From: Chlorokybus atmophyticus
Taxonomy: Eukaryota; Plantae; Mesostigma and Chlorokybus algae
Length of the DNA: 64,000 nucleotides
Direction: 5' to 3'
Assembly (NCBI GenBank): GCA_009103225.1
Contig: RHPI01002264.1
Span: forward strand, 111,644 to 175,643
In this document: positions 26,667 through 61,374 of the stretch, in pieces
How positions within the stretch are numbered: the first letter of the stretch is position 1
Layout: each line of letters opens with the position of its first letter
Notes under the pieces: generated by a model
What the model was told of the DNA's origin: nothing
Database searches by the model: none
What the model saw: only the letters and a program-made list of their open reading frames with translations
Made by a program: the position numbers and the translations under genes

Positions 26667-26700
26667 CTTCGAGGGCGAAGCTTCCCCAGAGGGGAAGGGG

Positions 26701-30300: not shown

Positions 30301-32029
30301 GCCAGCAAACTAACTCTAAGTGGCCTGTCTTGTGACAGTAGTCGCCAGACCAAAGTTGAGTACTCTTCGGTGCACTTCTTTTGGTAGTGCCCATGCTGTC
30401 CACATCGATGACACAGCACAAGGGCAGGCAAAGCAGTATTCGCTGATCGTTTCCCTTCGTCACGTGCTGGTGGAGCGTCCCGGCCACGTTCGCAGCGAGG
30501 AGGCTCGACAGTCGTGCTAGCTACATGCCGTGAGGCGCTGCGGTTGGTGTACAGCACTGCCTTCTCATACACCAAGCGCTTATGGATGGCTTGTGCAGTG
30601 TCGAAAGCTTCCTTGAGCGTGTAGCCAAGGGGCCTGCTGTAGTTCAGGGGTCAGGCGCGTCGACTTGCTCAGGGTGGCATCCAACTCATTGACATATACC
30701 GCTGCAGCCGCCTCGTCACTGACGATCTTGTAGTTAATGTTCCTCAACAGCCCTTCCAGTCTGGAGTACAGGCGTAGAGGGTCCTCATTGGGCTTGCGTC
30801 AAAACCGCCTCAACTTCTCCACTTTGCTCGTGGTCTGCGGTGGGAAGGTGCGACGAAGTGCAGCGTATAGATCCTTGAGTGGAGATTCAAAAATGGCAGC
30901 ACCTACAGTGATGGCTGGCGCGCGCAGTGCAATTGACCCGAGGGCGAAAGCATTGCCTCCCGCACGAGAGCCAGGTGTTGCCAAAGGTAGGGGTGTGCCC
31001 ACCTCAACTGCTGCTGTTCGTTGCTCCTCAAGGATAACAGCAGAACGGTCCAGGATCCAGGCCCGTTGTGCGGCCGTCTTGATCTCAATCTCTGCAGGGG
31101 TCAGGTTGGCGATCACCAACTCAGGTTCCTCCTCCTCTGCTCTGTCAATGGCTGCCGCTATGGACAACCCGGTGACTGCAGCGGGAGTGGCAGGTGGAAA
31201 GACGGCTGCTGGACTGTGCAGTGACGCAGATGCTATAATACTGGCGAGCTCGCCATAGCCATCAACTCGATGCAGTTAAGCAACAGACTTCCACACATTT
31301 TGTGCTACATGATCCAGATACTGAGCGGCAATGTGAAAAGAGATCTCGTCTGACCAATCTTCGTTTTTCAGAGCCTGCTGTCGCATCTTGGAGTGGAACT
31401 TGATGATGAATTCGTCCAGCGAGGTAGTGCCAGCACGTCCGCAGAAGCGCAGGGACGTGGTTCAGCTGAAAGACTCCATCTCGTAGTCGTCACTGTCGGA
31501 CGAGAGTGGGGAAGCTCGATGCCGAGCAGTGGACAGGAACGGAGTGAAGTCGGAGACAAAACGCGAGCCTCTGCTGAAATGATCATTGCTCCCGTCGCTA
31601 GTCCGCTCGTAGGTGAGATTGAAGGTTGGGCTTCAGCTGCTGAGGTCACCCTCGTCTAGCGGAGAGAACGGAGTGGGTTTGCTCATACAGCTAGTCCAAA
31701 GGTGAAAGTGTATGCAGGGTAGAGTGTTTGTGCTCTACCGCCTGTCTCGATGCCGCTACCACTCACCACACTAGTGCTTGTGTGCGCTATGTGATAACAT
31801 AGATAACAAATGCACAGGGATGTGTCCCCAGATACAGACTGCACTATCTGATGCAGAATGCAACGCACTCACTTGAGCAAAGAGGGTGACACCGTGAGTC
31901 AACAAGCCCATACCATAGGTAGTGCTGTTTACGCAGTTCTTTGCACGAGCGGAAAATATGTTACACTGTTAAGTGAGGTGAATGAGCAAGCAACATGCAC
32001 CGGTAATTCTGGACCCCCCAAATTTCTGG

Positions 32030-32690
32030 AAATTCAGCGCATTTGCCCTGAATACTCATGTGTTTTATGTGTGAACTCGCCACTTGCGTGGCTGCAGAGG
32101 TCGCTGTTACGGTTGCTGATTATTCAGGCCAAATGCCCTGAATACAAGCAATGGATATTCACACGTTTTGGGCATGAATAATAATTGTAATTGTCCATCT
32201 CGCACACAACCTCCTACATGTGAGTAGTTATTCACTCGCAACAGAACTGCATATTCAGTCTTCTTAGGTATACATGGTCCTAGACTTGTACCATGGCACC
32301 AAGTGATTATTCATACTTTGTGTGCGTGAATATTTACAGCGCCTGCTCTCACACTAGGTCCTCCTTATTAGTAATTATTCACACGCATATTGGCTTAATG
32401 TTCACACATACTAAAGCTGTTTCAACAGCACATGTACCATACTAGCAAGTGATTATTCATATGATATGTGATTGAATAATACAGCATATTTGCTCTCACA
32501 CATAGTCCTATATATGAGTGGTTATTCACCCATAGTATGGTTGAACAATCACTGCTGCCTTTGGTCGATTTTTCACGAGAATGATAATTGAATCATACAG
32601 CACTTCTGCTCACACACATAGTCCTACATATAAGTGGTTATTCGCTCACAGTTTGGTTGAATAATCACTGCATCTTGCTATCGTCAACAG
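32030..32690. repeat. Left subterminal array of TGAATA/TATTCA motifs in both orientations
   Basis: More than 15 copies by eye, e.g. ttattcac, tgaatattt, gatattcac, tgaataatcac. Confidence 0.8.
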
Positions 32691-39180: not shown

Positions 39181-39560
39181 TCTTGTTAGCCACCACTTGA
39201 TGCTAACCAGAGGGGCGGCCTCGTGCGTAAGACCACCTCTTGCTTAGTTTTTAAGCTGTTTTATTTGAGCATGCACTCTTGTTAGCAACCACTTGATGCT
39301 AACCAGAGGGGCGGCCTCGTGCGTAAGACCACCTCTTGCTCGGTTTTTAAGCTGTTTTATTTGAGCATGCACTCTTGTTAGCCACCACTTGATGCTAACC
39401 AGAGGGGCGGCCTCGTGCGTAAGACCACCTCTTGCTCAGTTTTCAAGCTGTTTTATTTGAGCATGCACTCTTGTTAGCCACCACTTGATGCTAACCAGAG
39501 GGGCGGCCTCGTGCGTAAGACCACCTCTTGCTCAGTTTCCAAGCTGTTTTATAGTTTTCA
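39181..39560 (+). repeat. Tandem repeat, 96-bp unit, 4 copies
   Basis: tcttgttagc(c/a)accacttgatgctaaccagaggggcggcc starts at 39181, 39277, 39373 and 39469. Confidence 0.95.
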
Positions 39561-39698
39561 TTGTGGCTGAGGCTAAAGTGTGCATGCTCAAGCTTGTCTG
39601 CATGCTCAAATAGGCAGCCGTGTGTGTGTGTGCATGCTCATGTTGCTCAACTATGTGTGCTTGTTTTTGGCTGTGAGGCTTTCCTCAGGTCGTTCATC

Positions 39699-42600
39699 AT
39701 GTCCAAGCGAAAGCTCGTTCCCCTTGGCCAGTTTAAGCCTGCAGGTAATAAGTAATGCATGCTTGTTCAGCATGATTATTGTTAACATGTGGTAACACTA
39801 GTCATGCACACAGACAAGAAGCACAAGGGTCCAGCGCACAAGAAGGAACCTGCTAAGAAGGAAGCTGTCCTGCAGAAACCCTGCAAGAAATCAAGTAATG
39901 TAGCGCTGTTCCAGCTGACCATACTAACGCATGCTCACTGCGGTTGTTTGCCACCATTGTTGCAATAACACTGTCTATTGCAGACCTTTTTGACACCACA
40001 AAGGCTCAGTTGCTGGAGGGGTTCAATAATTGGCGGAAACTAAGGGAGGAGGAGAAGGCTGGGAAGGCGAAGATGTCCACAGAATACAGTTGGGATGTCG
40101 TGGTTGAAATAATGCAGAAGAACCTGAATGAAGATCCTCGCTTGCTTGAGCTCGACAAGAACTTGCAGATCTGCCTACGGAAGTTCGTGGAGCACCAGCT
40201 CAGGCTTTGTGATCCGGAGGCAGCTGCTGGGGGTATGGACCTCGGGCATTTTGGCCTTGAAGATGTTGTTACCGATAATGACATCCATGAAGAAACGAAG
40301 ACAAAGTGGGGAAAGAAATTCTCTGACTGGAGGAAAGCGAAGGCGAAGAGCAAGAACCTCATGTCATGGGGTGAGCTGGTGGTCTTTATCAAGAAAGCGC
40401 TGCGCGAACCAGACTTGGCTTCCCTCGATCGAGAATGGAGGCTCAAGCTACGGCAGTATGTGGAGGAAGAGCTAAGGCTATGTGATCCAGAGGCAGCTGC
40501 TATGGGCATCGACATCGGGGAATACGATCTTGACTACAAAACAGAGGCGCCCAAGCAGCAAGTGGAGGCCCAAGCCAAGCAGCAAGCCGACGCGGAGGCC
40601 AAGCAGCAAGCGGAGGATCAAGCCAAGCAGCAAGTGGAGGCCCAAGCCAAGCAGCAAGCTGACGCGGAGGCCAAGCAGCAAGCGGATGCTGAGGCCAAGC
40701 AGCAAGCCGACGCGGAGGCCCAGCAGAAAGCTGAGGCCCCACGCAAGTCCCAGACTGCACAAATGCAGGAAGGGCCTCGACCTGAAGCCGGTACCTCTGC
40801 TTCTGCTGTTGAACCAGAAGACGGTCTACCTCCAGCAGAAACGGAGGGCGAGTTAGAGTTGGTTGGGCTGTTGCATGATAAACACCGGCTTCGGCTTTTC
40901 GATGCCTATGCAGTTGGGAATTGCTTCTATGCCTGCCTTGCCCAGTCGTGCCCTCGCGTGAACGCTGCGTGCTTGACACGCGCGAACGCAGCGGACAACG
41001 GGTCTTTCTGGCGAAGCATTGTGCTGGACAATGGCAAACAGCTGCCAACAAGAGAGCAAGCGCAAAAGCTTCGGAAGATCTGTGCTGAGCAGGTCAACCT
41101 TTATTGGTTGCTGGAGTATCGCAACTACGGGGCCTGTGGTGACATGGGCCAGGATTACAAAAAGATGGCCAGGAAATATGGCGTAACCAGGGCACTTAAC
41201 AAAAAGCAACTCAAGACTAAGCAAGATGAAGACAACGCTGTAGAGGCTCTGCAGAAAGTGATCGCTGAAGAGAGCGTTTATGCCGATCAACTGCAAGTGG
41301 CGATCATGGCGCACGCTCTTGGCATTCACATCGGTACTGTGTAGCTCACTGAGGTTGCCGACGAGAAGCAGAACTGCTGGAAAGCAGAGCACAAGGGCGG
41401 CCTCATCGAAGGCGATGACGGGAGGTACTACACAGTGGATGCCAAGGGAGAGAAGCATTCCGTCAAACCTGTAGTGGTGATTGGCGAGGATGTTATCGAT
41501 GTGGCTGGCCATATAATCATTGGCAACACGGATCCAAGCAAGCCCAGCGCGCATTACATGTCTGTTGGTGATGCAAATGGTATACTCTCTTGGCAGCGCA
41601 GCGACATGCCACCAGAAGTCCTGCGCTGCATGTACCCTGCAGATGCCGAGCCCCAGCCCCAGCCCCAGCAGCAAGCCCAGCCCCAGCCCGAGCCGCAGCC
41701 CCAGCCCCAGCCCAAGCAGCAAGCCGAGCCCCAGCCCAAGCAGCAAGCTGATGCCGAGGCCAAGCAGGCCAAGCAGGAGGCCAAGCAGCAGGTCAAGCTG
41801 CGGCAGGAGGCGGAGGCCAAGGCCAAGCTGGATGAGGACAATGCCAAGCAGCGGCAAGAGGAGGCCGAGGCCAAGCAGAGGCAGGAGGCGGAGGCCAAGG
41901 CCAAGCAGGATGAGGCCAATGCCAAGGCCAAGCAGAGGCTGGAGGCCGAGGCCAAGCAGCAGCAGGAGGAGGCCAAGGCCAAGCAGGATGAGGCCAATGC
42001 TAAGGCCAAGCAGGAGGAGGCCGAGGCCAAGCAGAGGCAGGAGGCGGAGGCTAAGGCCAACGAGGCTAAAGACCAGCAAAGGCAGGAGGCTGAGGCCAGG
42101 AGCCAGCAGGAGGCTGGCGCTATGCAGGTTGATGCCGCTGTTGAGGAGGAGGCTGATGCTATCAGTGATATGTCAATTGACATCAGCACCGCAGCAACCA
42201 GTGACACCAGTGACACTAAGAAACGCAGACGCCGCCCGTCACGCCGCCAACAGCGAGCTGCTTTGCAAAGGGACAACACGCCTTCCGGTGCTTTTCGGAA
42301 GCTGCATCGTGTGCAACAGGGGGAGCGCACCGTGGACGAATATCACGCGCAGTTTGCACAATTGTGCGGGGTGGCAAACACCTGCGTTGAGCTGGTGCCT
42401 AAGGCCCTTAAGCTACAACTGTTTCTCCAGGGACTCAGGAAAGTAGTGCGCATTGGCGTGCCCAAGGGTCCTTGCAACCAAGATTGGAATGCTGATCAGT
42501 TCGATTTGCTTGTGTCGGCTGCCAAGACTTGTGAACGGACCTTGCTTGTTAAACAGCAAGCACACCTCGTAGATCGTTCAAAGTTCGAGTTAGGCAAAGC

Positions 42601-42883
42601 AAGGCCAAGCAGGTTGCAGAAATTGGAACGACTGGAACAAATCAGCAGTCGTCGGGAGGGCAAGAAGCTGGCACATCAAGCTGCATATCAGCGTGAGCAG
42701 GAGATGATAGCTGCACAGGAGACCCTTGAGCAGCAGGAGCAGCTGCGTAAGCAGCTGAAGCGGCAGAAGGAGGAGGAGCGCCAATAGATAAAGCGAATGG
42801 CTCAGCAGGGAAAGGAGCAGCGGAAGCAGCGGCGGGAGCAGAAGGAAACACAGCCGCAGCAGCAGCTGCAGCAGCAGAGGTAG
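39699..42883 (+). pseudogene. Cargo gene: duplicated helical repeat, OTU-like cysteine protease, Ala/Glu/Gln/Lys repeats and a retrotransposon-gag-like segment; in-frame TAG at 41342-41344 and 42785-42787
   Basis: MSKRKLVPLGQFKPAG plus two introns, then one long frame; DAYAVGNCFYACLAQ (Cys at 40922), YADQLQVAIMAHALGIHI and AHYMSV (His at 41552) match the OTU motif order; LHRVQQGERTVDEYHAQFAQL...LFLQGLRKVVRIGV matches the gag QGxxxVxEY...F..GL signature. Confidence 0.75.
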
Positions 42884-44009
42884 CTGTAACAGCAACCTCG
42901 AGGTTGTTCACTTCACGACTACCAGCTTTGCACCCGTTGGAACCCGCATGGACACTGCTTGTACAATAGCAAAAGTTGCAAGTATTGCTCTCGTTAACAT
43001 TTGCTGCTGTTGTGTTTGCAGGAGCCTCTGCTACCTCACCATACCTGTGCAGAATCTACCGTTCTTGCAGCGTAAGGTCAACCTCATGTGTAAGTGTATC
43101 TATTAATTCAAGCTGAACACAGAGGCATCTTCTAGATTTAGCCCTCTGTTTTCTCATTCCCGATTCGGGTTTGAGCTCATGCTGAATGCAGAGGCATCCT
43201 CGTGAATAAGCCCTCTGCTTGCTCGTTCTGTCTTTGTATGCAGAGCGTAGGGGCATCACCCTGTGATTAAGCCCCCTTCTTGCTCACTTTCTTGCCCCCT
43301 TCTTGCCTGTGCCACCTGCTTTCGCTGCTAACCAGCAGGAAGTGGAGGTGTTCTTCCAGGTGACATGACAGGAGCTTGACATGACAGGATAGAGGAAAGA
43401 CAATCTCGTGGTCTTTGTACAGGATAGAGTGTGTTAGCTTTAGCTGCCTGTCTGTGTGTGTTGAAGGATTACAGCAAAATGCAATCACCCACATCTGCCT
43501 GTCCTTGTATGGTTAGGATCATCCCGACTGCACGCGGGTTCACTGCGAACGCACCGCCTTGGGAGCCTTGCTAGCTGCTGTTTGTATGCAGTCACGGCGC
43601 ACAGGTAAGTGTGGCAGCACTTGTAGAGTGGAGGTGGTAACAGAAGTCCGCAGTAAGTCATGAGGTATGCATCGCTCTCGTGCATATACTAATTGTGATT
43701 GCATTTCACCTTCTCAACCACCTCCAGCCTCTGCATGGAACTTGTTGGTCGCGATCTGCTCCAGGGCTTTTGGATGGACGGCGGTTGTACCTGCCGCTGG
43801 GGTTGGGTTGCTGTTTGTGATATGGCAACTCAGGCTGGCAGTCCTTCTCCCCCCACCCACCCGAGAGAACACCTCTTGCTGCTGTTGACATGCCGCCCTC
43901 GTACTGGCACGCCCTCGTACTGGCCCCGGCAACCGCTGAAACCGGGCATGTGTCCAAAGATTGCACGCAACCAAAGGCATGCGCACAGCAACCTAGAAGT
44001 TCTTCTTCT

Positions 44010-44217
44010 CCGCCCACCCACCCGACACAAAACCTCCTGCGGGTTTACTGCGAACGCAGGATGTGGTCCTGCAGAGCCGTCTCGCGCAAGTCGCGTACTG
44101 TAGACTTTGTGCACATGCTCAGAGCCTCTGGTTCATGACTTTCGCGAGTCAGCTTTGGTTGGACCATACCCTGCGTTCGCAGTGAACCCGCAGGAGGTCT
44201 AGTCTCGGGTGGGCGGA
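44010..44217. repeat. Long inverted repeat (about 57-60-bp arms, 91-nt spacer)
   Basis: 44010-44069 ccgcccacccacccgacacaaaacctcctgcgggtttactgcgaacgcaggatgtggtcc versus 44161-44217 ggaccataccctgcgttcgcagtgaacccgcaggaggtctagtctcgggtgggcgga. Confidence 0.9.
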
Positions 44218-44408
44218 CGGCGCAACAGGGCATGAAGGTGCTCTGGAAGAGACCCTGCCTAGCAGGTCAGTCTTTCCCGTGCTGGCAAACAGAGGCATCC
44301 TCGTGATTAAGACCTCTTGCTGACTTTATTTATTGGGTCGCTCATTTTGTTGTTGGGTTTGAGTTCAGGCTAACAAAGTGGCCAGCAATCAAGAGCTACC
44401 TCTACCTT

Positions 44409-45176
44409 TCAGTAAAAAGGAGGGTAATCAACAGTGAAGCCTATTGCTTCCAGCAACAGCCTGCCTACATGTTCAGAGCAAGTTGGTGGAATGGCATTCT
44501 TGACTTCCGATTCCGCATCCATCCACTCCACCTGCATGGCAGACTGCCACCCTGCAATCGTGCCACGGCAGGATGCTTGGCCGTACACCGGGTGAATTTG
44601 CCTCTCCCCAGGTAGCAACTGTCGGCGCTGCTCCGGGTGGGTGGCCAGCTCTCCAAGTGCACAACCAGTGTGGTTGCATTTCAAGTCTGAGTGCAGTGGA
44701 GGGTTTGTCTCGAAGATGCGATGACGATACACATCCAACTTGAACATGGTGCCACACAGCTTCAGGTGAGTTGTCATGTGTCCTGATGCGCCTGCGACAT
44801 TCTCTATCACCCATGGCTTGCCGCTCAGCTGCAACTTGGCTCTTATGGGGTCAATTAGGTTGACGTGCTCGCGTCGATTGCCGTACGCGGAGCGCTGTGT
44901 AGTGGGAATGGCCCCACTTAGAGCTTGACATGGAGGACTTGCCCACACCGCAGCGTATGCTGTCGGGTCAGCGTCCATTGCATCCATCTGGCAGAACTTG
45001 AATGGGTATGACGGTTGTGGCTTGTTGTCGATGCCCTCAACATCAAACCCTGCCCTGTACAAACCCATGGCTACACCACCAGCGCCGCAAAAGAGATCCA
45101 GTGCGCGCGGCCTGCAACGCCTTCCGTTTAAGTCTATTGGTGTGCGTGTGATCAGAAGGGTGGGGGCTTGGGCCAT
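44409..45176 (-). CDS. Compact prokaryote/phage-type C5 cytosine DNA methyltransferase domain (255-aa intronless ORF)
   Basis: Motif I ALDLFCGAGG; II/III GIDNKPQPSYPF; IV WASPPCQ (catalytic Cys); VI PWVIENV; LCGTMF; VIII YRHRIFE; C-terminal AMQVEWM...NAIPP. Confidence 0.93.
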   Translation of the reverse strand: MAQAPTLLITRTPIDLNGRRCRPRALDLFCGAGGVAMGLYRAGFDVEGIDNKPQPSYPFKFCQMDAMDADPTAYAAVWASPPCQALSGAIPTTQRSAYGNRREHVNLIDPIRAKLQLSGKPWVIENVAGASGHMTTHLKLCGTMFKLDVYRHRIFETNPPLHSDLKCNHTGCALGELATHPEQRRQLLPGERQIHPVYGQASCRGTIAGWQSAMQVEWMDAESEVKNAIPPTCSEHVGRLLLEAIGFTVDYPPFY

Positions 45177-46156
45177 CGATCAAGCTCTCGACCAGGCAAG
45201 TCTTGCAGTTTCAGACAGCTTTGACCACCAACACGAACCATTACGTCGTAACCCTCACGCACAGCTGCCATGTTCCAGTTCTTTATCAAGATGTGGTGCA
45301 GCCGTGGGTCCTCAACGAAATCGTCGTACTTGATGGTATGTTTTCCTGAGCCACATGTTTGCCTGAGCCGGTGCTTGCATGAGCGTGCGCATGTAAATAC
45401 TCTGCAGTATACCTGTGTTGGCATCAAAAGTGATGATGTGGCCTGCATACCAGGAGCTCATTCCTGGCCAGTACACCACAACGCGGCATGCTACCAAAGA
45501 CTGCCCCTCATCAACAATCTCCTTCCGCCAAGCAGCCAGTGTCGCGACATCGTCGACAACCGCGTTCCCCTTTGGCATTCAAGAGTAAGTTGGTCATGCA
45601 TGCAAGCGCTGTTTTGCTGTTTGCAAGGACAGTTCAACTCGACAACCGCCAAGCAGCCAGTGTCGCGACATCGTCGACAACCGCGTTCCCCTTTGGCATT
45701 CAAGAGTAAGTTGGTCATGCATGCAAGCGCTGTTTTGCTGTTTGCAAGGACAGTTCAACTCACCCTGTTGTTGACATCGTCTTCAATTACCGTGGACTTG
45801 CCGCGACCGTTGCGCACGAGCTGACGTCGAACCACATTGCACATCTGCCCATCGTGATATGCTCCAGGCCGTGCCCAAGGCAGGTGATTCATGGGCTCGC
45901 CGTCCCACTCAAACTTGGAAAGCGAGCACTGCAGGCAAGTGCACTCCTCCCAAAAGAAATCTGGCCTCATGCATTGTGCCAGCAGTCTGCATTGCCTCAC
46001 ATTGTCCCCCCTTGCCTTGTGGTGCCAGCAGGCTTCATAGAAGCCATACTGCTCACTGTACAGCTTGCACTTCTCTTCATGCTGTTGCAGACGTCTGTTG
46101 TTGCCATTCCTAACCAAGTATGCTTTGCAGAAGCTACACACTTTGACGCCGCGCAT
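45152..46156 (-). CDS. Spliced 5' part of the methyltransferase locus: Zn-finger/Cys-rich exon plus Tudor-like domain
   Basis: Exons 46156-45764, 45569-45413 and 45345 onward join in frame through GT-AG introns; CSFCKAYLVRNGNNRRLQQHEEKC (C-x2-C...H-x3-C); LVACRVVVYWPGMSSWYAGHIITFDANTG|KHTIKYDD (PDS5/PTM-like Tudor). The frame overlaps the MTase ORF start and needs one extra base (e.g. in the C5 run near 45165) to read through. Confidence 0.7.
45525..45761. repeat. Tandem duplication, 121-bp unit, of an intron end plus exon start
   Basis: ccgccaagcagccagtgtcgcgac...cagttcaactc at 45525 and 45646. Confidence 0.95.
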
Positions 46157-46321
46157 GCTGGCGCCACGCTACCTGGCACACAAACCCTAGAAGCTAATGC
46201 ACTGGACGGAAGAAGAAAAGGAGCATGTACGCAAATTGTGGAGCATATCCGGATTGACTTTCTGGCTTGTTTTGAATCGGGATTGGATGTGTCCTAAACC
46301 CTTAATTTACGGTAGGCAGTC

Positions 46322-49300
46322 ATGACGGTGGCGACGGCGGCGGTGTCAGCGGCGGCAGCGTGCCTGCAGGTCTTTGCTTTCGCTGTATGGAAGTTGATTG
46401 GCAGTTGCTTGCAGTATGTTGGCTGACTGCTTTTGATGTTTGTAGCATGAGCTACTTTCGCAGGTGTTTTTGCCGCGACTGCAAAGGGAGCAAAGTGTTC
46501 ACACACAACCACATTAGAAGGGCTGAATATCATGAAAACTTTGGCAAAAACATGTGGTGTGGCACTCCAGAAGCTGTTGCTCCTGAATACCGTGATCGAC
46601 TACAACCCCATGAACTTGAAGAAGCTGATGCTGCTGTTGCTGCTGCATCCTTACACATGTCGTCAGGTACGAGAGCAACTTCTCTACAGCTGTGAATCTA
46701 TACAACAGGCTGTCTGATCATTGATCTGGCTTGCCCCAGGTGAAGCTCTCCATGACACCGAACAATTGCTAGTTGGGAACGACGCTATTGAACATGTTGA
46801 CACAGGCACGCCGTTGCAACCGAGTGTTGAATCTCCTTTCAATGTTGCAGCCAACTTGCAACCAGCAGGTACGACCTGACTTGCGTGGCATGTTGACATT
46901 GCGGATGCTGTGCCTCTCATTGTTCATGTGCCACTAGACTCATTGCAGCTGGCAGGTTGTAATCCGTGTGCTCATGAAGGACAATGTGCTTCTGGAGAAC
47001 AACGCGAATCTCACCCAGCATTTTGTGGAATTGAGAATGCTACATTGCAAGAGCATCAAGGTGCCAGAACCAAATCCACAAATGGACAAGTAGAGCCTGA
47101 GACGCCAGTGCACTGCACCTCCACTGCTGAGCAAGTCGATGCGGAGCAAGGTGATGCGGAGCAAGGTGATGTTGCCGGCGAAGACCAAGACTATGAAACC
47201 GATGTGGAATCGCAGCCGAACGAGGCTAAATGCGTTGATGATGCCATGCTACTTGACAAGGTGAATGCTGCGTTGCTGGATAATGCAAGCAACCCTGTTG
47301 TTTTCGGCTCTCGTACAACCCCTCTAGGCATTTCCATGCTGCTATTGGTTCTGGCGCAGCTACATCGAATACCCTTCAATTTCATGAATAAACTGCTCAG
47401 GTTGGTGGGTAAATTACACTGCTGACTGCTCAGCCTGTTCAGAACTGATGTGTTTTTGTGTGCCAGGTTGTTACGTGGCATCCTCTTGCCTAAGGAGAAT
47501 AAGATGCCAGGCAGCATGCACGAGCTATTGAAATGCCTTGAAGGCCTCAACATGGGCTTCCACACATATGATGCCTGTCGCTGTGATCACATGTTGTATT
47601 GTGGCCGACATGCCAACAGGATACTTTGCAAAGGTGAGCAATTGTTGCAAATGTTCACTACAATGGGATTTGATTAGCATGTCCCATCAGCATACGACTT
47701 GCTTATGCAGTCTGCAAGGCCCCTCGCTACCGCAACATAAGAGGTAGACAAGTTGCATGGAAAATTGGGCGTTACTTTGACGTGCCTGCTGCGCTGAGGG
47801 CTCTGTACCTAAAACCTAGTGTTGCTGCGGAGATGATGGCGCACACAAATCGAAGTCAGGATGGGATTATGCGATCTATACACGGTAACATTACCAAGTT
47901 CAGTGGTAAATGAGGCACGACTGTGTGCATGATTGTGTTGGTGAGCGGCTGGGGCAATCCAATGCAAGCCCTCCGTGTCCGTGCCTTGTGCTTTTGTGTG
48001 CGTGGCGCTGAGGCGGCATGTAAGACCTCGGTGTCCTTGCCTGTGTTTGTTTGTGTGTCGGCGTGGCGCTGAGGCGGCATGTAAGACCTCGGTGTCCTTG
48101 CCTGTGTTTGTTTGTGTGTCGGCGAGGTGCTGGGGCGGTATGTAAGACCTCAGTATCCAGCCTTGCGATTGTATGCATGTTTGAATGTGTTGTGGGGCTG
48201 GGGCAGTTGGTCGTAAGCCCTTGGTGTACTTGCTGCTGTCAGACTCGCCAATGTTCAAGGACACTAAACAACGCTACAGCCGGTTTGCCAAAGAACCACG
48301 CAATGTGCGCCTAGCGATGTTCATCAACGGGATGAGCCCGTTCAAAGATCCGCACAAAGATATAAAAGAGCATTTTTCTTCCTGTATGCTCGTTGCAGTG
48401 TAAATGTACGAATGGCAGCAAAGGGTTTGTTGAGTTGCAGGGAACTATGAGTTTTGGGTTGTCACAATCTCAGTGTTGAACCTGCCCATTGCCAAGATGC
48501 ACAAGACAGACACTACATTTCTAGCTGCTGTAATCCCTGGACCCAAACAACCAGAGAATCTACAGGCTTATCTCAAGCCAATTATTGACCAGTTGGGAGA
48601 TCTCTGGGAAGGTATGGTTTCAACGCAGCTAGGATAAGCAGCTTCCATTACTGCAGTCATGCCTGACTAATGCGCATGACTGAGGCATATAATCTGCTGG
48701 CATTTGTTGTAGGTATAGACGTATATGACAGCCACCGCGACGCAGTTTTTCGTTGCAGATCTATTCTGGAGATTGTAATCCATGATTACCCAGGTACTCA
48801 AGCAGCAGCAGTGTTTGCACTTACTGTTATCAGTGTCTGACTGTATCTGTATATTGGACTGTCCTTACAACCATGGTTGTGGCTACTGAAGTACAACATG
48901 TTGGTTGCGCAGCTCTGGCAAAAGCTGCCTTGCAGATGGCGCATGGAGCCATCTTTGGCTGTTAAAAGTGCGAGTGCAGTGGAGAACATGTGGAACTTTT
49001 TAAAAAGGTGATCTATCAAGGCCACCGCCGATACCTACCGGATGACCATCCTTACAGAGTTGATGAGCGTTGGCCGCAACCAGAACACAGACCTCCACCA
49101 CCCATGCGGACTGCAGAGAGCGTGTACAGGTGAGCAATCTCAGTTGATTGCGCATTCGGTTGCAGAACATAGGTATGTCAGCAATGGATGCCATGTGATC
49201 AGGTATGCTATGACATCTCGCAACAGCAAGCGTCCACTGCACTCCAAGAGACATCCTTCAAAGACCTCCGGCATCCTTGGACTGAGCTGTTTTCACGACC

Positions 49301-51460
49301 TTCCATATTGGCTACCGTTACAAAAATCTGTCAAAGGTCATGTGGTTGGCCCTATGCACATTTTTGCCAACCTGGCAACCAACTTTGCAAATCTCCTAGC
49401 TGGCTTGCGCGACAGCATCGAATCACGAGAAGATCTGCAGCAGCAAGGCCGCATGCCTGAACTCTGGCTAGAGGTACGTATGTAGTCGGCCTCGTTGACA
49501 TGTGCCATAGTTGGATTTAACCAAGGACTTGAACCTATGTGCTGCAGACAGATGAAGATGAAGGATGGAAAGGAAGTCGCAGTCAAGGTAAAACCCCAGG
49601 CTCCATGGACAATCACAGATGTAGGACTGGTTGAGCAATTGCTCTCCGGCGTGAGGGTTTCAAGCACTTTCGGCTCGAAACTGCGGTCTTTCACAAAGCA
49701 TTTAGGTGAGATAGCCGTTATATGTTTTGTGTTTACGCTAAAGCAATCATTCTCCATGCATGGACAACTTTTGACATGGAGCATGCAGGCTCGATGAAAT
49801 CGCACGACAAGCACAACTTATGGTCGGTTGTTTTTCAGTACGTGCTGCGCTCTGCACACGACATTGGAGAAGGTTAGAAGAGAACCATCTTCAAACTATG
49901 CGACATCTATCAGCGGCTGACTGCATTGGAAGTAAAGCAGTCACACCTTGAAGAATTGAAGGTTGGCTTTAATAACACTTTACTCTGCATGTCCAGCTCC
50001 TATGGCATGCGTAGCTTATTACTTAGTGCAGGTGCTGGTGCATGAGGCACAGTCTGAAGTGGAGCTGTTCTTCCCGCGAACTTCTCTCACAATGATGCTG
50101 CACCTCCTTGGCCATCTACCAGAGCAGTGCATGTGGCTTGGTCCGACGCGTGACCACTGGGAGTGGGCACATGAACGCTTTATGCAGTGGGTGAAGCGCA
50201 TGATATTTGCAAGGCAGCATGTGGAAGCAAGCATCTGCAAAAGGCAAGTTTTGTGTGAGCCCACTGAGAGTTACGTGCAAACTTTCCACATTGTTTGCCT
50301 TGTTCAAGTGCCAGTTGCATCTGCAGATACTCTATCCAGCTCATGCTGAACACTTACATGGACACCTTGAAGCGACTTTTCTCCGACATCAGTTTGCGAT
50401 CGGGCAAGCAACGAGATGATGACGACTATGTGCTCTGCGGACGGAGACACCGTATTGAGGTTGGGGATAAAGATAGTAAGACAAGGCAGGAGCTCGAGTG
50501 GTGGTTGGCTGAGAATGACAATGAATACAGGCTGTTAAAAGAGTAAGTTGCTTTGGGAGTTGCTGTTTTGTACGTGATGTCCAACGCACAGACAGTATGA
50601 TTTATTTATGGGTTGCTGCTACACAGAGAGTTCAGTCGGGAGGTGAAACAAACGCAGGATGGCAAGGGAAAGGGCTCAAAAACAAGGACATGTCGTGGCA
50701 AAGGACATGGAGCATATGACTGAGCTGCATCACTGGCGTGGACCTGCTAGGGAGCTTACAAAGCACGAGATGGAGCTGTTGAGCGGTCCAATCTTTCCAA
50801 AGTACATCAAGCGATACTTCAGAGCACGCTACAAGGACATCGGTCAGTTCAGAGCAGAGGAAATGGAGAAGAAACTCCGCACCATGGACTGTGGCGTGTT
50901 TACCGTTGGGCGTGACTCAGATGACCCAACCAAGAAGATCCATTGGTATGGCAGGGTGCAATCTTTTGATGTTGTGGTGATAGCTGGTCGGGAGCACCAG
51001 CTGCTCAGAGCTAGGTGGTAAGACAAGCCCCGCTTTGCAGAACAAACCTACCTTGATTGCAACCTGGTAAGTGGCTGTGTTGCAATCGTTTTGGCGTGTG
51101 CTTGGTGTGATGATAGTAAATTGAAATAGTAGTATGAAAATGGCTGATGAATATCCCTTCTTGCTGGCAGGTCAAGGGCCAGTGGTTTGAGGGAATTGAT
51201 CCCCATGACAACAAAGTAACAGTAGCGCTTGTTAAAGACAGGCGCAGTCTCATGCGTCGAGGCATGCACCGGGACACTCCGGTAAGAGGAGAGTTAACAA
51301 CGTTGTCCATTAGAATCTGGATGTCCTCATATATCCTGGGTTTTGGCATCACATACAACCATCTTGTGTACTTGGTGCAGGGTGCCCAAAGCGAAACCAA
51401 TAGCGCCTCGAGCGAGGTGTCATGGACCACACGCCGCGACTGGCATTTTGAGTACAAGAG
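46322..51460 (+). pseudogene. CACTA TnpD transposase (transposase-associated Zn domain, Tnp2/Transposase_21, DUF4218, DUF4216-like); multi-exon and inactivated
   Basis: CFCRDCKGSK...HIRRAEYHENFG; YDACRCDHMLY; EPRNVRLAMFINGMSPF; VLNLP...VIPGPKQPENLQAYLKPIIDQLGDLWEG; HDYPG; YQGHRRYLPDDHPYR; PMH; MKSHDKH; MMLHLLGHLPEQCMWLGP...WAHERFMQWVK; RTMDCGV...WYGRV; TAA at 48964-48966 and a frameshift near 50670. Confidence 0.92.
47975..48155 (+). repeat. About 60-bp tandem repeat (3 copies) in a transposase intron
   Basis: gctgaggcggcatgtaagacctcggtgtccttgcctgtgtttgtttgtgtgtcggc repeated. Confidence 0.85.
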
Positions 51461-51536
51461 GTACTGTTTGCGATTGTGATGCCTCATATCCCTACTGTGA
51501 GACTGTAGACCTGGACACTGAACCTTTGTTCACAGG

Positions 51537-53418
51537 ATGAGACCGAGACTGGAGCTGGATGCGTTGGAACATTGGGAAAACAACATGAAGACTACTGCTT
51601 TGTCTGCAAGGATGGGGGCACCATATCTGGTTGCGATGTGGAAGGTTGCTGGAAAAGCTACCACGCGCACTGTGTCTCTATGCCACCTGTGGAGGATGAA
51701 TATTGGGAGTGCCCAAGGCATGAGTAAGTGGACTTCATTGCAGCAAATGCTTGGCATCTTGTTGTGAGGAACTTCACTCCTAGAACCATCATCAATTGTA
51801 CTGAACCAAAACACAGGTGCCATGTGAAGAACTGCAACGAAGCAGCTTTTCAAGTCTGCGCAACGTGTCCAAACAGCCTCTGTCGACGGCACGCTGTGGG
51901 TAGCATGGTTGAGGTTACGTGCTCGCGATGCGCTGCGTACGAAGAAGGTGGTGCTCCAGCGCAGCTCCCAAGGGAGAGCCTTGCTCGTCGTTCTCTGCCG
52001 GGCAGTTGCGGTAGGGTTTCACAACCTGTGCAGAGTGGGGTTCAACACGTTGAAGAGAGTGGGGATGAGGCTAACAATGGTAAGCTGCTGTGTGCTTGAG
52101 CTTGTTGATTTGCGTTGTGGTTCTTGCCCAATTGAACCATTTATGGCTGCAGAGGCAGTCACGATGGAAGTTGACGATGAAGACGAAGAGGGCTGTAATC
52201 AGCAACCCACGACGGCTGCGGCAGTTGTGGACCTCGTGGGCAGCGATGATGATATCATGGTGCTGGACGATCCAGTCAGCAACCCGCAGCCGTCAACACC
52301 GCAGCCACTGTTCATTTACCCTAGTGCAAGTGCACGTGATGCGGTGCCAGTGCTTGAAACGGACAGGAGGTTGCTGGATGGCAGACAAGAGCTCAATGAC
52401 ACCATCCTCCACTTCTTTTGCAGGTATGTGATTTGTTGCGTCTGTGTTATTCGTGTATCTCATATGTACGTGGGATGCACATGCAGATACAAGGAAGAGG
52501 AAATCTTAGGCAGAGCAGATGGCATTCAGGTGAAGCTGTTCCACCCGCATTTCTACACCAAGATCGTGCGCTGCCATATACAAAATGTTTGGCACACGAG
52601 CAATCACAGGATAGACAGGTGGGAGAGTGATCCGTTTGCCAAGGACTTGCTGGGAGTGATTGTCAACCCAGACACGCGGTGAGAATAAGCGCCAAGAATA
52701 TCTTGCTGAATTGCTGCTGTATTTGCAAACTGGAATTATTTTGATTGTGTACACAGGACTCACTGGAGTCTGCTGCTTGTGTGCAATCCTGGAGGCCAAC
52801 GTGGAAGTGACACGCCGCCTTTACTCGTTCATCTCGACTCCCTTGGCCTGCATCGCAACGTTGATGGACCTACGCGCGCTTACCTTGACTACATGTGGGG
52901 CAGAAAGCATGGAAGTGACTCACAACAACGCTTCTCTCCCGAAAACGTACAGCTTCTTGTACCACAGGTAGCACACGTTGCATTGCACTAGTGATGAGTT
53001 TGCATGCATTCTGTCACAAGCACTGATTGGATGCATGCACATGCATTTGGTTTGCAAGCATTGACACATGTTTGTGCAGGTCCCTCAGCAGAAGGATGGA
53101 GTTGCGTGCGGGTTGTTTGTCATGCTTTATCTTGACAAGTTTATAGATGGGGTACAAGCTGGTCCAATTGACCCAAACGCACGGATATTTCAACAGGTAC
53201 AGTTCATGCATGTGCACTGCAATGTTTACAAGTGGAAGGTGCTTCAATGGCACTGTCGCGTAGGCCGACACGTGCTTAGTAACCACATGTTATTGCTGTG
53301 TGGTTGTGTGCAGATGCAAAGGAGTTGGTTTCATCTCCAAGTGGCAGACAGGTTGAGAAGACGATTGCGAACATTCATGGACAGTATGTTAGCACAGCAA
53401 AGACATGAGTTGAGCTAG
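51537..53418 (+). CDS. PHD finger, C5HCH-like Cys-rich module and Ulp1/SENP (peptidase C48) SUMO protease; 7 exons; possibly spliced to the transposase transcript
   Basis: HEDYCFVCKDGGTISGCDVEGCWKSYHAHC...WECPRH; CHVKNCNEAAFQVCATCPNSLCRRH; LNDTILHFF, LFHPHFYTKI, THWSLLLVCNPG (His 52761), HLDSLG, QQKDGVACG (Cys 53107); GT-AG introns. Confidence 0.85.
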
Positions 53419-53569
53419 TAGTAGCAGGTGGTGTGTAGCATAGCAATGCTGTAGTCCATATCAGAGCTGTCCCCCACCATCAACTCAAACCAGCTGTGTA
53501 GAATTGCTGAGCAACTCTGGCTTTGACATATACTAGACTGTATATCAGAATTAGCAGTGCAATCTACTT

Positions 53570-54180
53570 GGTTTTCAATCACATTCGAGACTTGGCCAGA
53601 ATGAGAGTATATGTTTATTCGTGTGGGGTTGAATATTCACTCACCGCTAGGAGTTAGTGCAAAACGTCTTGCTTGGTTTTGGAATGGTGTTGAAAATTTA
53701 CTCAAAGCTAGGACTTAGTGTGAATTGTATTGCGTAGTTTCAGATTGGTGTTGAATGTTCACTCACATCTGTGGCATGAAACTGATGAAGGTTATGAATA
53801 TACATGTGTGACAAGCTGATCAACTGATTATTCACGGGCAGTTGGGACTTGGTGAGTTTAAGCTGTCTGTTATAGCCACAAGTCTATGCCCCTTCATGAA
53901 TGTTCAGGCAATGTATAGCTGAATATTTAGCAGAGCACATGCTGTGTCCATTCACAACTGCATGCCCTTGAACATTCAATCGATTTCAACTGAATATACG
54001 AGGTATATGGGTTTTAAAAGGTGGCATTGATTTATCGTGTGGATATTCACGCGATTTGTAGGTGAATGTCGCGATTTCGTTTTGGCAGGGATTGCACAGA
54101 ATGTACGAAAACACTTGAATATTCACTCGATAAAAAGCTGAAACGGTAAATCAAACGAATATTCAGTGCGTTTGCCGTGA
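53570..54180. repeat. Right subterminal array of TGAATATTCA-like semi-palindromes
   Basis: gttgaatattcactc, gttgaatgttcactc, catgaatgttcagg, cttgaatattcactc, cgaatattcagtg. Confidence 0.8.
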
Positions 54181-54819
54181 AATCTCATAAAGTCGGGGGT
54201 CTCATAATTACCGGTGATGTGGATTCTATGCCCTGACTGATGCCATCAGACACACTGCAACCAGGCACATTAAGCTCACAGCGATGACAAGCACGATGCA
54301 CACACGAGCATGCACAGGCTCTCACACCGTGAGGCGGTTCTTGGTAACCGGGATGGCGTGTTCGCAATTCAAGTCGTTTCAGAAGCTCTTAGCTTTCTCA
54401 CTCGCAGTGTCACCAGCTGATCCGGTGAACCCTGTGACTACTTATACAAGTCAAGTCTTGATTGTTAAGAACATAAGCTAATGGTCATACTGAGGCTATT
54501 TCCACAGCGATTGTCACTCGATATAGAACACAACTTATAACTGAACTCACAGCTGAACAGCTACGCGCCGTGCCCATGTAGGCTATGGTCGTGAGCTACT
54601 ATAAAGTCATGGCCTAGCTACTGGTCCGTGACGCGCGCGCGCTGGTATGCTGGTAGGTCGGGCGATGGTTTTGATGTAGCCATGCTCGATGAAGGCTGGT
54701 ATGCGTGGGCAAATAGGCATGACAGATGACTGCCGCATCAACGGTCCCCGACACAGTCGGTAAAAGCTGAGTTCTGGAGCAGAAGGCTACCCCAAAACTT
54801 CAAGGGGGGTGGCTCGTTG

Positions 54820-55920
54820 ACTGTGTGTACTACAGTACAGTAGGTACAGTAAGGAGGAGAGCGTCACCAGCTCTACTACTGATCATATTCTCACATAGGT
54901 TGATCCCCGAGCCTATGCCTATGTCTTGGGGGTTGTCTTTGTTTGTGTTGCTTTAATGCTGCGCCAGCATGCCCACGGCATGAGCGCTCATCTGCAGTGT
55001 GCCTGAGACGGCGTGACCCTCGTCCATGGCAAGCACGACAGCTGTCATGCCAACTACCCTCGCATGCCAGTCCTCCTCGAGTATGCCTACATCCAGCCCT
55101 AAGTCCGGGCTACCACCATAAAGACCGCGCGCGCCCCAGCCTACTGCTAGCTACTTCGTACTCTAAGTAGCATGTAGCTAGGGCTACTCTACAGACCTCT
55201 CTGTAGGAACAGCGCGTAGCTGATCAGTTACGAATCCATTATCAGCTGATGTGCTATATCGAGTCTTAGATCATTTTCGTAGTAGCATACGGCCTCGATG
55301 TGATCGTTGGCCAAGTGCCCGTATGGTACTGCACAGTCATGGTTTTACATGCATAAGCAGGAAGTCATGTCACTAGACTCGCTAATGACAGCGTGAGTCA
55401 GCACTAAGAGTAGAGACTCTGACTTTAATAGCTTTAATAGCTTGTGTAGCGACTTGAATTGGAAGCACACCGTCCCGGTTGCCAAGGATTGCCTTACCAT
55501 GTGAGACACAGTGTATGTTCTTGCACGCCGTGCTTGTCATTGCTGTGAGCTAGGCGGTGGTGTGTTTGCTGCATGAGTCAGGACATAGCATCTCCGAGTT
55601 GCTTGTTCATTCACCTCATTTAACAGTAAAATACATCCACTCATGCAAAGAATTGTGTATACAGCACCACCTATTGTAGTGGCTTGTTGACTATGTGTAC
55701 TACAGCATAGTAGGTATAGTAAGGAGGAGAGCGTCACCAGCTCTACTACTGATCAGATCCTCACAGAGGTTCATCCCCAAGCCTATGCCTATGTTTGAGG
55801 GGTTGTCTTTGTTTGTGTTGCTCTAATGCTGCGCGCAGCACCAGCATGCCCATGGCACGAGCGCTCGTCGACAGTGTGCCCGAGACGGCCTGACCCTCGA
55901 CCATGGCAGGCATGACAGTG
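54820..55920 (+). repeat. About 230-bp direct repeat pair (54820-55050 and 55690-55920)
   Basis: gtgtactacag...gtaaggaggagagcgtcaccagctctactactgatca...gcctatgcctatgt occurs twice. Confidence 0.85.
55430..55740 (-). repeat. Inverted, uninterrupted paralogue of the sequence flanking the CACTA insertion (31870-31997 plus 54217-54400)
   Basis: Reverse complement reads gaggtgaatgaacaagcaac-tcggagatg-ctatgtcctgactcatgc versus the joined flanks gaggtgaatgagcaagcaac-atgtggatt-ctatgccctgactgatgc. Confidence 0.85.
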
Positions 55921-56110
55921 CTAACACGCAAAAAAGACATCCGTTTATACGTGGCGTGGAGCTGAAACGTGCCACAAATAATCGCGCGATTTATATGCTG
56001 TAAGTGAATGCGTAGTAGCGGGTGAACAAGTGAATGTGTGTATTATAATTAAGAGATTGCACTCACATATATAATGCGTATGCTAGCATGTATATCACAC
56101 CCATACGCAG

Positions 56111-56112
<2 letters not shown>

Positions 56113-56165
<53 letters not shown>

Positions 56166-56197
56166 GGNNNNNNNNNNNNNNNNNNNNNNNNNNNNNN
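56113..56197. repeat. (GA)n microsatellite followed by an N gap (56168-56197)
   Basis: Direct reading. Confidence 0.95.

Positions 56198-57574: not shown

Positions 57575-61374
<3,800 letters not shown>

Follow-up and report, generated by a model that had tools for sequence, protein, structure and literature searches.

The window, that is, the whole 64-kb stretch of Chlorokybus atmophyticus DNA analysed here, harbours an ORF for a C5-cytosine DNA methyltransferase (MTase) that is transcribed away from the gene of a TNP2-type transposase. The coordinates of both genes, those of the repeats and coding pieces around them, and the identifiers of the closest relatives of the enzyme are collected in Table 1. 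The spacer between the MTase-side gene and the divergent transposase gene may act as a shared promoter region. The window also holds an intact chromovirus integrase ORF, whose matches do not go beyond 48% identity and are scattered where named (Planoprotostelium, Closterium, liverworts, Tanacetum), and an Rfam search of the window detected no RNA genes.

Table 1. Features in and around the MTase and transposase genes (positions in the window), and giant-virus relatives of the MTase
Feature	Position	Strand	Basis or detail
Inverted repeat, left arm (171 nt); candidate left terminus of a 23.8-kb element	31897..32067		
Low-complexity gag-like ORFs within the candidate element	39899..42784	+	weak Retrotrans_gag match, zinc knuckle
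Repeat-rich region 3' of the MTase	43534..44239		palindrome arms 43991-44069 / 44161-44239
C5-cytosine DNA methyltransferase ORF, 255 aa	44409..45176	minus	ATG-to-stop ORF listing
Same-strand coding pieces upstream of the MTase	45152..46156	minus	Cys-rich ORF 45755-46156; Tudor-like 45312-45578 and 45152-45448
Perfect tandem duplication inside the upstream gene region	45525..45761		116 nt identical, period 121
Intergenic spacer, about 200 bp, separating the divergent MTase-side and transposase genes (204 bp apart)	46157..46359		coordinates only
TNP2/En-Spm (CACTA superfamily) transposase gene, many pieces	46360..53415	+	domain searches
Transposase domain: tnp2	48185-49130		
Transposase domain: DUF4218	49963-50346		
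Transposase domains: NSD-type PHD and C5HCH	51509-52096		
Transposase domain: Ulp1/C48-like	52710-53415		
Subterminal repeat array 3' of the transposase	53624..54128	+	61-bp tandem units
Inverted repeat, right arm, two pieces	54147..55692		54147-54220 and 55598-55692; 72% and 82% identity to the left arm
Nested 1,377-bp unit splitting the right arm	54221-55597		own inverted ends 54222-54391 / 55435-55592
Giant-virus (Nucleocytoviricota-like) C5-MTases with inserted methyl-CpG-binding domain (MBD)			P0001, P0123, P0125, P0128, P0388-P0396
Further sources of the giant-virus clade			contigs L168, L170; Chromochloris zofingiensis gene model P0173

The MTase ORF is uninterrupted, with 0 stops and 0 frameshifts over its 255 codons. 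All the motifs reported in the initial annotation were found in it, namely FCGAGG (motif I), SPPCQ (IV), ENV (VI), RHRIF (VIII) and NAIPP (X), as were the additional strings YPF, LCGTMF and AMQVEWM; motif IX is present too. Motif I reads DLFCGAGG (residues 27-34) and occupies columns that are invariant, or nearly so, across 66 relatives. Motif IV is formed by S80-P81-P82-C83-Q84 with Cys83 as the catalytic residue, P81 and C83 being invariant among the relatives, and a similar conservation applies to E125-N126-V127 of motif VI and R151-H152-R153 of motif VIII. Overall, the protein matches 47 of the 49 columns conserved in at least 90% of the relatives and 66 of the 71 conserved in at least 80%. 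Its target-recognition segment is short and without an MBD insert. The match to Pfam PF00145 is marginal (23.1 bits, with the threshold at 22) and confined to the N-terminal half. The AlphaFold2 model has a pLDDT of 92 and a pTM of 0.90, and Foldseek placed M.HaeIII, DNMT3A/B, DNMT1 and MET1 at the top of its matches, each with a probability of 1.0. As judged from the integrity of the gene and from the modelled fold, the product of the locus looks like an intact SAM-dependent C5-cytosine DNA methyltransferase of the "mini" type, with a putative activity on C5 of cytosine in DNA. Other searches were less informative: the PDB sequence search returned generic N-terminal SAM-MTase matches and nothing more, NCBIfam gave no meaningful match, the type II MTase matches of PADLOC were confined to the N-terminal part, and a lookup of the exact ORF product in public assemblies found no record.

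The family to which the enzyme belongs is large, and the mini type is abundant in phages, mostly actinophages. A search of 5.8 billion proteins yielded more than 7800 matches, the best with E=2.5e-66, and an exhaustive phmmer search gave 4091 representatives with E<=1e-3, 302 of them with E<=1e-30. The PHROG 363 profile, "DNA methyltransferase", matches residues 20-238 (3.3e-26). Among GenBank phage records 324 match, 190 of them from Mycobacterium phages and 52 from Streptomyces phages; identity is about 40%, and the aligned part makes up some 90% of the protein. In 298 of the records at least 80% of the query is covered. In IMG/VR more than 405 loci match. By contrast, structural alignment to canonical DNMTs gives an identity of just 12-16%, and the ORF contains none of the RFTS/BAH, PWWP/ADD, chromodomain insert, UBA or SNF2 domains. 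The close sequence relatives are all phage or giant-virus proteins, and not canonical eukaryotic DNMTs (DNMT1/MET1, DNMT3/DRM, CMT, DNMT5), in agreement with the initial proposal of a compact phage/actinobacterial-type C5-MTase distinct from DNMT1/MET1/CMT/DRM. The mini C5-MTases of Mycobacterium, Gordonia, Streptomyces and Arthrobacter phages share with the window enzyme a length of about 200-250 aa, motifs I/IV/VI/VIII/IX/X and a very short recognition segment. Two features of the window enzyme are missing from them, a tail motif at the C-terminus and a clade-specific insert that follows motif IV, and the window enzyme, unlike them, resides in a eukaryotic genome with a eukaryotic transposase alongside. 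One relative that seemed to bear an insert (L115) turned out to be a phage gene with a partial duplicate in front.

The nearest relatives are C5-MTases of giant viruses with an MBD (Pfam PF01429) inserted in the enzyme between motifs VIII and IX. Identity to them is 43-49% overall and reaches 54% over the N-terminal half in P0389. Their contigs are gene-dense and encode TopoII, mRNA triphosphatase or capping enzyme, RPB10, kinases and UCH; the neighbour genes of the relatives on L001-L004 are uninformative ORFans, and the relatives' contigs have no similarity to the window at the DNA level. An IMG/VR scan with an MBD-clade member as query returned short phage-type relatives only. The giant-virus enzymes and the window enzyme have in common an N-terminal lead-in, the insert after motif IV and the C-terminal tail. 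The tail, of the type G-[YFW]-T-[VI]-D-Y-P-P, occurs in 8 of 344 family proteins, seven members of the giant-virus clade and the window MTase, and the insert in 20 of the 344, which are the giant-virus clades, the window MTase and one other. The two differ in that the giant-virus proteins carry a 65-130-residue MBD-containing insert, whereas in the window MTase the MBD is cleanly absent from the alignment and the whole 64-kb window is devoid of MBD-like fragments. Moreover, the viral genes lie in intron-free arrays with no adjoining transposase, while the window gene adjoins one. In NJ trees of the family the window MTase is sister to the giant-virus MBD clade with weak bootstrap values (57% and 32%), and this clade leaves it out in 80-88% of the replicates. 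The enzyme would thus branch at the base of the giant-virus lineage or beside it, and probably not inside. Since the nearest relatives form the MBD-insert clade, a giant virus or its lineage is the more likely donor; the resemblance to actinobacterial and phage MTases noted in the initial annotation correctly placed the family, but the nearest kin are on the giant-virus side.

The class II transposase reported next to the MTase is supported by matches to Transposase_21 (best piece 1.5e-10), DUF4218 (1.2e-9), PHD_NSD (1.5e-6) and C5HCH (1.7e-5), and by a weak downstream match to the Ulp1-type Peptidase_C48 (0.007-0.027). Four collinear pieces cover positions 8-207 of the 213 of the Transposase_21 profile. 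This collinear coverage is what would be expected of an intron-split gene; therefore, although the transposase lies in many pieces, it lends no clear support to the earlier description of the neighbouring element genes as decayed.

The 23.8 kb between the 171-nt inverted repeats include both the MTase and the transposase, and when the surroundings of the gene block were scanned for inverted pairs of 30 nt, this repeat at 31.9/55.6 kb was the sole result. Because the repeats enclose both genes, the location of the MTase inside a DNA transposon, as first proposed, is plausible. Against it, only one copy of the unit of MTase, transposase and inverted repeats was seen, no target-site duplication was found at the repeats (flanks gtg / atg, with no longer duplication either), and CACTA termini were not recognized: the CACTACAA pattern occurs at chance frequency with none at plausible ends, and no CACTA/TAGTG pair flanks the block. 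The two arms could also stem from a small repeat that has nothing to do with the element and happens to occur twice. CACTA elements have short terminal inverted repeats and a 3-bp target-site duplication, and a terminal repeat of 171 nt is unusual for them. As the repeats are old, their arms being 72-82% alike, a duplication may have been lost to decay; since there is one copy only, the mobility of the unit is offered as a proposal. In the array 3' of the transposase a 14-nt motif occurs 5 times (0.34 expected by chance), and in the repeat-rich region 3' of the MTase an 18-nt motif occurs 3 times (0.03 expected); the right-hand motif, searched in inverted orientation, is absent from the left, and the two sides share no motif. 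The gag-like ORFs within the candidate element would derive from a retroelement fragment, nested in the element or captured by it.

The MTase was initially described as intronless, which is true of the ORF itself; the upstream Cys-rich and Tudor-like pieces, however, are bounded by GT..AG and may share its transcription unit. Either they serve the MTase gene as 5' exons or they make up a gene of their own. The first Tudor-like piece matches the Tudor domain of A. thaliana PDS5C (7de9, E=0.024) and Pfam Tudor_KDM3B (0.062), and the Cys-rich piece had no domain or sequence match in the searches made. The last Tudor-like piece is out of frame with the MTase ORF, which amounts to one frame change in the present sequence. 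Among the N-terminally extended relatives, reader domains, Tudor included, are absent. The MTase may be linked with the upstream Tudor-like reader.

We propose, with a probability of roughly 0.6, that the window gene is a phage-type mini MTase that arrived via a lineage on the giant-virus side, is resident in the host, and is most likely an accessory gene of a TNP2/CACTA-type transposon. In the model, one lineage of the mini C5-MTases abundant in phages would have passed to giant viruses, gaining there the internal MBD; the window gene would have split off at the base of this lineage or beside it, and a long residence in a eukaryotic genome would have followed. Because the MTase and the transposase share one pair of 171-nt inverted repeats, the MTase would most likely move as an accessory gene of the element, and both genes may be mobilized together. 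From the conserved residues and the fold, SAM would be bound by motif I together with motif X at the C-terminus. The PC-motif cysteine, Cys83, would attack C6 of a flipped-out cytosine, the base being held by Glu125 of ENV and by Arg151/Arg153, and the methyl group would be transferred to C5. The short recognition segment would imply a short target, and the MBD of the sister clade hints at one containing CpG. Such an enzyme may let the element place 5mC on its own DNA or on that of the host.

It is possible, if unlikely, that the gene is instead a host-resident orphan DNMT, laterally acquired, for instance with an endogenised giant-virus fragment, and now a fixed gene or relic beside a transposon that does not mobilize it. 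The nearest relatives are indeed giant-virus genes, one of them annotated in the genome of a green alga on a contig that looks viral, and virus-derived orphan DNMTs have been widely reported in eukaryotes (PMC12344493; PMC11244446). The boundaries of the element are only candidates, and the upstream coding pieces have the look of spliced exons, as in a host gene. However, no other viral-type gene accompanies the MTase in the 64-kb window: among the 57 ORF pieces of at least 120 aa there are no viral hallmark domains, just retroelement and transposase domains, for which an endogenised giant virus (GEVE) was rejected as the identity of the window. The tight divergent pairing with the transposase, at 204 bp, and the one pair of long inverted repeats round both genes also speak against a mere neighbourhood.

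A direct transfer from actinobacteria or their phages into the element, independent of giant viruses, corresponds to the initial annotation and is quite unlikely. The identity to actinophage proteins, the length of the enzyme and its missing MBD fit this origin, and some short phage or bacterial proteins nearly match the giant-virus ones in core distance. The tail motif and the insert after motif IV nevertheless point to the giant-virus clades, as does the HMM affinity, which for the window MTase is intermediate, +13.8 bits toward the giant-virus clade, compared with -72..-8 for phage-type members; all 29 short family members have an affinity away from that clade. In addition, the best viral structure match is the C5-methylase of Pithovirus LCPAC201 (E=1e-19, 35% identity), whereas phage entries reach 13-18%.

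We consider it improbable that the gene is a dead relic, neither expressed nor active, whose ORF is open by luck. The surroundings are old and CpG-depleted (CpG o/e 0.63), the inverted repeats have diverged, and the reading frame changes on the way from the upstream pieces to the ORF. Neutral decay, however, would not leave 255 stop-free codons with a confident fold prediction, almost all the highly conserved columns and every catalytic residue. Contamination or a chimeric assembly, with a phage or bacterial read placed in a eukaryotic scaffold, is refuted for practical purposes in spite of the overwhelmingly prokaryotic or viral distribution of the family, and the concern raised in the initial annotation is answered by a stretch free of assembly gaps from 38865 to 56167 (none within 5 kb either side of the ORF), a window-typical GC content (55%) and dinucleotide signature (26th percentile of window segments), a closest database sequence only about 49% identical overall, and an ORF abutted by the GT..AG-bounded pieces and the eukaryotic transposase. 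The MTase gene is compositionally at home and has been resident long enough to acquire the composition of the host.

Eukaryotes silence transposons mainly through cytosine methylation, and hence a transposon with its own methyltransferase reverses the usual relation. The pairing of an MTase with a CACTA transposase is a pointed one, since CACTA elements are the textbook case of transposons controlled through methylation at their own ends. Orphan DNMTs borne by transposable elements or viruses are a known kind of gene. Retrotransposon-borne DNMTs occur in dinoflagellates and charophytes, as the initial annotation correctly stated (de Mendoza et al. 2018, PMC5890265). Those elements resemble the present case as eukaryotic mobile elements associated with a C5-MTase that retains its catalytic residues, but they are class I (LINE, DIRS, LTR) and multi-copy, with DNMTs of eukaryotic DNMT3 descent or unresolved origin, in contrast to the TNP2 neighbour, phage/giant-virus-descent enzyme and single observed copy of the window. 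Mariner transposons with a C5-MTase and an endonuclease have been described in giant phycodnavirus genomes (Bao & Jurka 2013, PMC3627910). With these the window shares a DNA transposon, a C5-MTase passenger and a link to algal giant viruses; the Mariners, however, belong to the Tc/mariner superfamily, lie in a viral genome and carry a canonical MTase of 344 aa with a restriction-type nuclease, whereas no nuclease partner was seen among the ORF pieces of the window. The TET/JBP dioxygenase genes on fungal DNA transposons (PMC12730594) likewise encode enzymes acting on cytosine modification on class II elements, but they oxidise or remove 5mC rather than write it, and belong to another host kingdom and another fold.

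C5-MTases borne by transposable elements are so far documented in retrotransposons of dinoflagellates and charophytes and in Mariners that reside in the genomes of giant viruses. A case from a nuclear element of class II (TNP2/CACTA) would be an independent instance, with a clear route from phage to giant virus to a mobile element of the host. In the giant-virus mini-MTase clade the MBD is placed where target recognition normally sits. Several members of this clade score below the PF00145 thresholds of published DNMT surveys, and therefore the lineage is likely under-counted. More tentatively, and with considerable doubt, the locus could be an autonomous green-lineage TNP2/CACTA transposon with its own de novo C5-MTase, captured from the giant-virus branch of the phage mini-MTase family and coupled to a histone-reading Tudor-like module, the transposase for its part carrying NSD-type PHD fingers. 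Were this true, the element would both read chromatin and write DNA methylation, and the giant-virus MBD enzymes would amount to CpG methylases of a minimal read-and-write, maintenance-like kind, overlooked by DNMT surveys that rely on PF00145.

The methyltransferase gene is an open frame of 255 codons on the minus strand, running from ATG to stop with no stop codon or frameshift inside; the initial annotation had called it still open, and every sequence string quoted there is found in the translation. In alignments with 13, then 65 relatives, the window protein keeps every invariant position of the family, including G38, G48, D50, P81, C83, E125, N126, G142, R151, W218, P230 and P231, and matches 47 of the 49 columns conserved in at least 90% of the relatives and 66 of the 71 conserved in at least 80%. 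Pfam DNA_methylase (PF00145) reaches 23.1 bits (cut-off 22, E = 5.7e-5) on the N-terminal half only, and the phage family PHROG 363 covers the whole protein (3e-26). The AlphaFold2 model, computed from an alignment of 66 sequences, is confident (pLDDT 92, pTM 0.90). Compared with solved structures, the model fits M.HaeIII, DNMT3A/3B, DNMT1 and MET1 best, each at probability 1.0 and at only 12-16% identity, which on the predicted fold identifies the protein as a real C5-cytosine methyltransferase without a close solved relative. Judging from conserved residues and fold, motifs I and X would bind SAM, the target cytosine would be flipped out, Cys83 would attack C6 and the methyl group would be moved to C5, while Glu125 and Arg151/Arg153 keep the base in place; the family's chemistry is established, and the window protein should follow it. 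Its target is probably short, since the recognition segment is short.

A word-indexed search with the window protein gave more than 7800 hits, nearly all metagenomic, of 200-240 aa and 42-47% identity, and an exhaustive search gave 4091 cluster representatives. The protein matches 324 GenBank phage records, at about 40% identity across about 90% of its length and with host genera that include Mycobacterium (190), Streptomyces (52), Paenibacillus (28), Arthrobacter (22) and Gordonia (19), as well as more than 405 IMG/VR loci on phage-sized contigs; its closest short-type relative, P0011, lies on a typical phage contig. The initial assignment to the compact phage/actinobacterial C5-methyltransferases is therefore right. 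Four family members, P0002, P0121, P0122 and P0126, are tandem doubles with two mini-methyltransferase units in 380-450 aa; the tandem doubles are prokaryotic or phage.

The nearest relatives of the window protein are giant-virus genes. Its highest-scoring hits (P0001, P0123, P0124, P0125, P0128, P0173, later P0388-P0396) exceed it in length and align in two stretches, because an insert separates their motif VIII from motif IX. The insert is an MBD (methyl-CpG-binding domain) by Pfam, and in the predicted model of P0390 (pLDDT 90) it folds into a compact sheet and helix. The contigs bearing genes of this MBD clade are gene-dense and intron-free, with a Nucleocytoviricota-type gene set. Two of them, L168 and L170, are mutually syntenic, the methyltransferase adjoining the type II topoisomerase, and the L168 gene was called as two ORFs. 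In a viral structure library the window protein matches the Pithovirus LCPAC201 C5-methylase best (E = 1e-19, 35% identity), and phage entries rank far behind. P0173 also occurs in EukProt, as a gene model on an unplaced scaffold of the green alga Chromochloris zofingiensis, and the segment of contig L167 that holds it, gene-dense and with UCH and mRNA capping enzyme genes, resembles a giant-virus segment that has become endogenised. In dinucleotide composition the whole L167 contig lies 0.058 from the window and all other relatives' contigs 0.14-0.25, a hint that the genome around the window may be that of a green alga with similar composition; L167 and the window have no similarity at the DNA level.

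Three features link the window protein to the giant-virus clade: a lead-in at the N terminus, an insertion that follows motif IV, and a C-terminal tail motif. Of the 344 family proteins compared, only 8 have the tail motif, seven from the clade plus the window protein. The MBD is wholly absent from the window protein in the alignment, and no fragment of it was found elsewhere in the 64-kb window. In neighbour-joining trees on 209-211 core columns the window protein branches as the clade's sister, weakly supported (57% and 32%), and 80-88% of the replicates keep it outside. In a tree-independent test, proteins were scored against profiles built on the same columns. The preference for the clade is 44-99 bits in clade members and 13.8 bits in the window protein; the 29 short phage/bacterial members all score against it, by 8-72 bits. 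Profile scores and tree placement argue for putting the window protein at the base of the giant-virus lineage or close to it, with the MBD either never present or lost. The likeness to actinobacterial and phage enzymes noted initially holds for the family type; the closest kin are giant-virus genes and not actinophage proteins. That the sister clade carries an MBD hints at a CpG target.

Taking into account that: (i) no assembly gap interrupts 38865-56167; (ii) the ORF is typical in GC content (55%) and dinucleotide signature (26th percentile of divergence among 768-nt window segments); (iii) CpG observed/expected around it is 0.63-0.69, a depletion shared with its surroundings, and (iv) the closest database protein has about 49% identity overall, contamination is unlikely. 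Over the candidate element CpG observed/expected is 0.63 and TpG+CpA 1.49; the young LTR element has 0.82 and 1.35. Low CpG with TpG+CpA excess is a footprint of deamination and suggests that old repeats are CpG-methylated by the host.

The methyltransferase and transposase genes are both enclosed by one pair of long inverted repeats (171 nt) that bound 23.8 kb. Two repeat pieces abut in the left arm; in the right arm they are kept apart by 1,377 bp that form a unit with inverted ends of its own, a hallmark of nested insertion. A 240-nt direct repeat overlaps the same area. A subterminal repeat array lies downstream of the transposase. The inverted repeat is unusually long for a textbook CACTA element. 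The location inside a class II element claimed at first is plausible, with a probability of 0.55-0.6: enclosure by the inverted repeats speaks for it, and against it stand the failure of searches for CACTA termini flanking the gene pair and for a target-site duplication at the repeat ends, and the single copy of the unit seen.

At least 12 coding pieces, spread over three frames, make up the transposase gene. Four of them match Transposase_21 in collinear order (profile positions 8-44, 48-109, 103-137 and 151-207); after these come DUF4218, an NSD-type PHD finger plus C5HCH, and Ulp1 protease matches, the last of them weak. The pieces could be separated by introns or by breaks, so that decay, which the initial annotation supposed for the neighbouring element genes, is only one possible reading; complete and collinear coverage of the tnp2 profile argues against heavy decay. 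Divergent from the transposase, across a spacer of about 200 bp, is the methyltransferase-side gene. Upstream of the methyltransferase, also on the minus strand, are one Cys-rich ORF and a pair of Tudor-like pieces, whose borders look by eye like GT..AG introns. In searches with each upstream piece separately, the first Tudor-like piece by itself matches the Tudor domain of Arabidopsis PDS5C (7de9, an H3K4me1 reader) at E = 0.024, weakly indicating a Tudor domain. One frame change between the last upstream piece and the methyltransferase ORF may be a break, an intron or a gene boundary. A perfect tandem duplication spans an apparent exon-intron border and would be either very recent or an assembly artefact. 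Chromatin-reader modules, the one on the methyltransferase side being putative, are thus present on both sides of the divergent gene pair.

The window is eukaryotic and almost wholly mobile elements, with neither host genes nor viral hallmark genes among the 57 ORF pieces that measure 120 aa or more. It also holds older retroelement remains. Two gag-like ORFs, with which no pol was found, may be a nested fragment or a captured gene. Long microsatellites yield spurious long ORFs and swamp inverted-repeat searches.

Coordinates of features in the window and on relatives' contigs (L-numbers)
Feature	Location	Strand	Details
Methyltransferase ORF	44409-45176	-	255 aa
Candidate element	31897-55692
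Inverted repeat, left arm	31897-32067		pairs with 55692-55598 and 54220-54147
Nested unit	54221-55597		inverted ends of ~170 nt, 54222-54391 / 55435-55592
Direct repeat	54809-55041 / 55679-55918		87%
TNP2/En-Spm-type transposase gene	46360-53415	+	many pieces
NSD-type PHD + C5HCH module, Ulp1-like protease tail	51509-53415		within transposase
Perfect tandem duplication	45525-45761		period 121, 116 nt 100% identical; upstream gene region
Ty3/gypsy chromovirus, young	21193-27394		RT, RNase H, integrase, chromodomain; open ORFs RT/RNase H 501 aa, integrase/chromodomain 507 aa
Chromovirus LTRs	21193-21878 / 26701-27394		95.4% identical
Degenerate chromovirus relative	13730-16418		inverted, 67% similar
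Two long low-complexity ORFs	39899-42784		weak gag and zinc-knuckle signals; between left repeat and methyltransferase
(GA)n/(CT)n microsatellites	56113-56166; 57722-58555
Spurious microsatellite ORF	57434-58633		SL-repeat "protein"
Small assembly gaps	56168-56197; 58556
MBD-insert mini-MTase genes	L168:9239-10534; L170:8803-9858		contigs with mRNA triphosphatase, kinases, ABC1, 1,089-aa type II topoisomerase, thioredoxin, YqaJ nuclease
MBD-insert mini-MTase genes	L001:606-1568; L002:447-1616; L003:2028-3050; L004:30-1043
P0173 gene	L167:6806-7819		UCH, mRNA capping enzyme on contig
Endogenised-looking segment	L167:1-10080
Giant-virus-type contig	L165		RPB10-like subunit, kinase, RING protein

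Retrotransposon-borne DNMTs are known (PMC5890265), and by analogy with them the enzyme might deposit 5mC on its own element or on the host's DNA, with the upstream reader as a possible guide. A C5-methyltransferase and a nuclease are borne by Mariner elements of giant phycodnaviruses (PMC3627910), and fungal DNA transposons carry TET/JBP genes (PMC12730594). A limited literature search found no description of a TNP2/CACTA-associated C5-methyltransferase or of an MBD-insert mini-methyltransferase, which is absence of evidence only. Orphan virus-derived DNMTs, usually without companion domains, have been gathered from many eukaryotes by PF00145 at E<1e-4 (PMC12344493; PMC11244446). Since several MBD-clade proteins fall below PF00145 even at E = 0.01 and the window protein itself reaches 5.7e-5, surveys of DNMTs based on this profile would overlook most of the giant-virus methyltransferase lineage.
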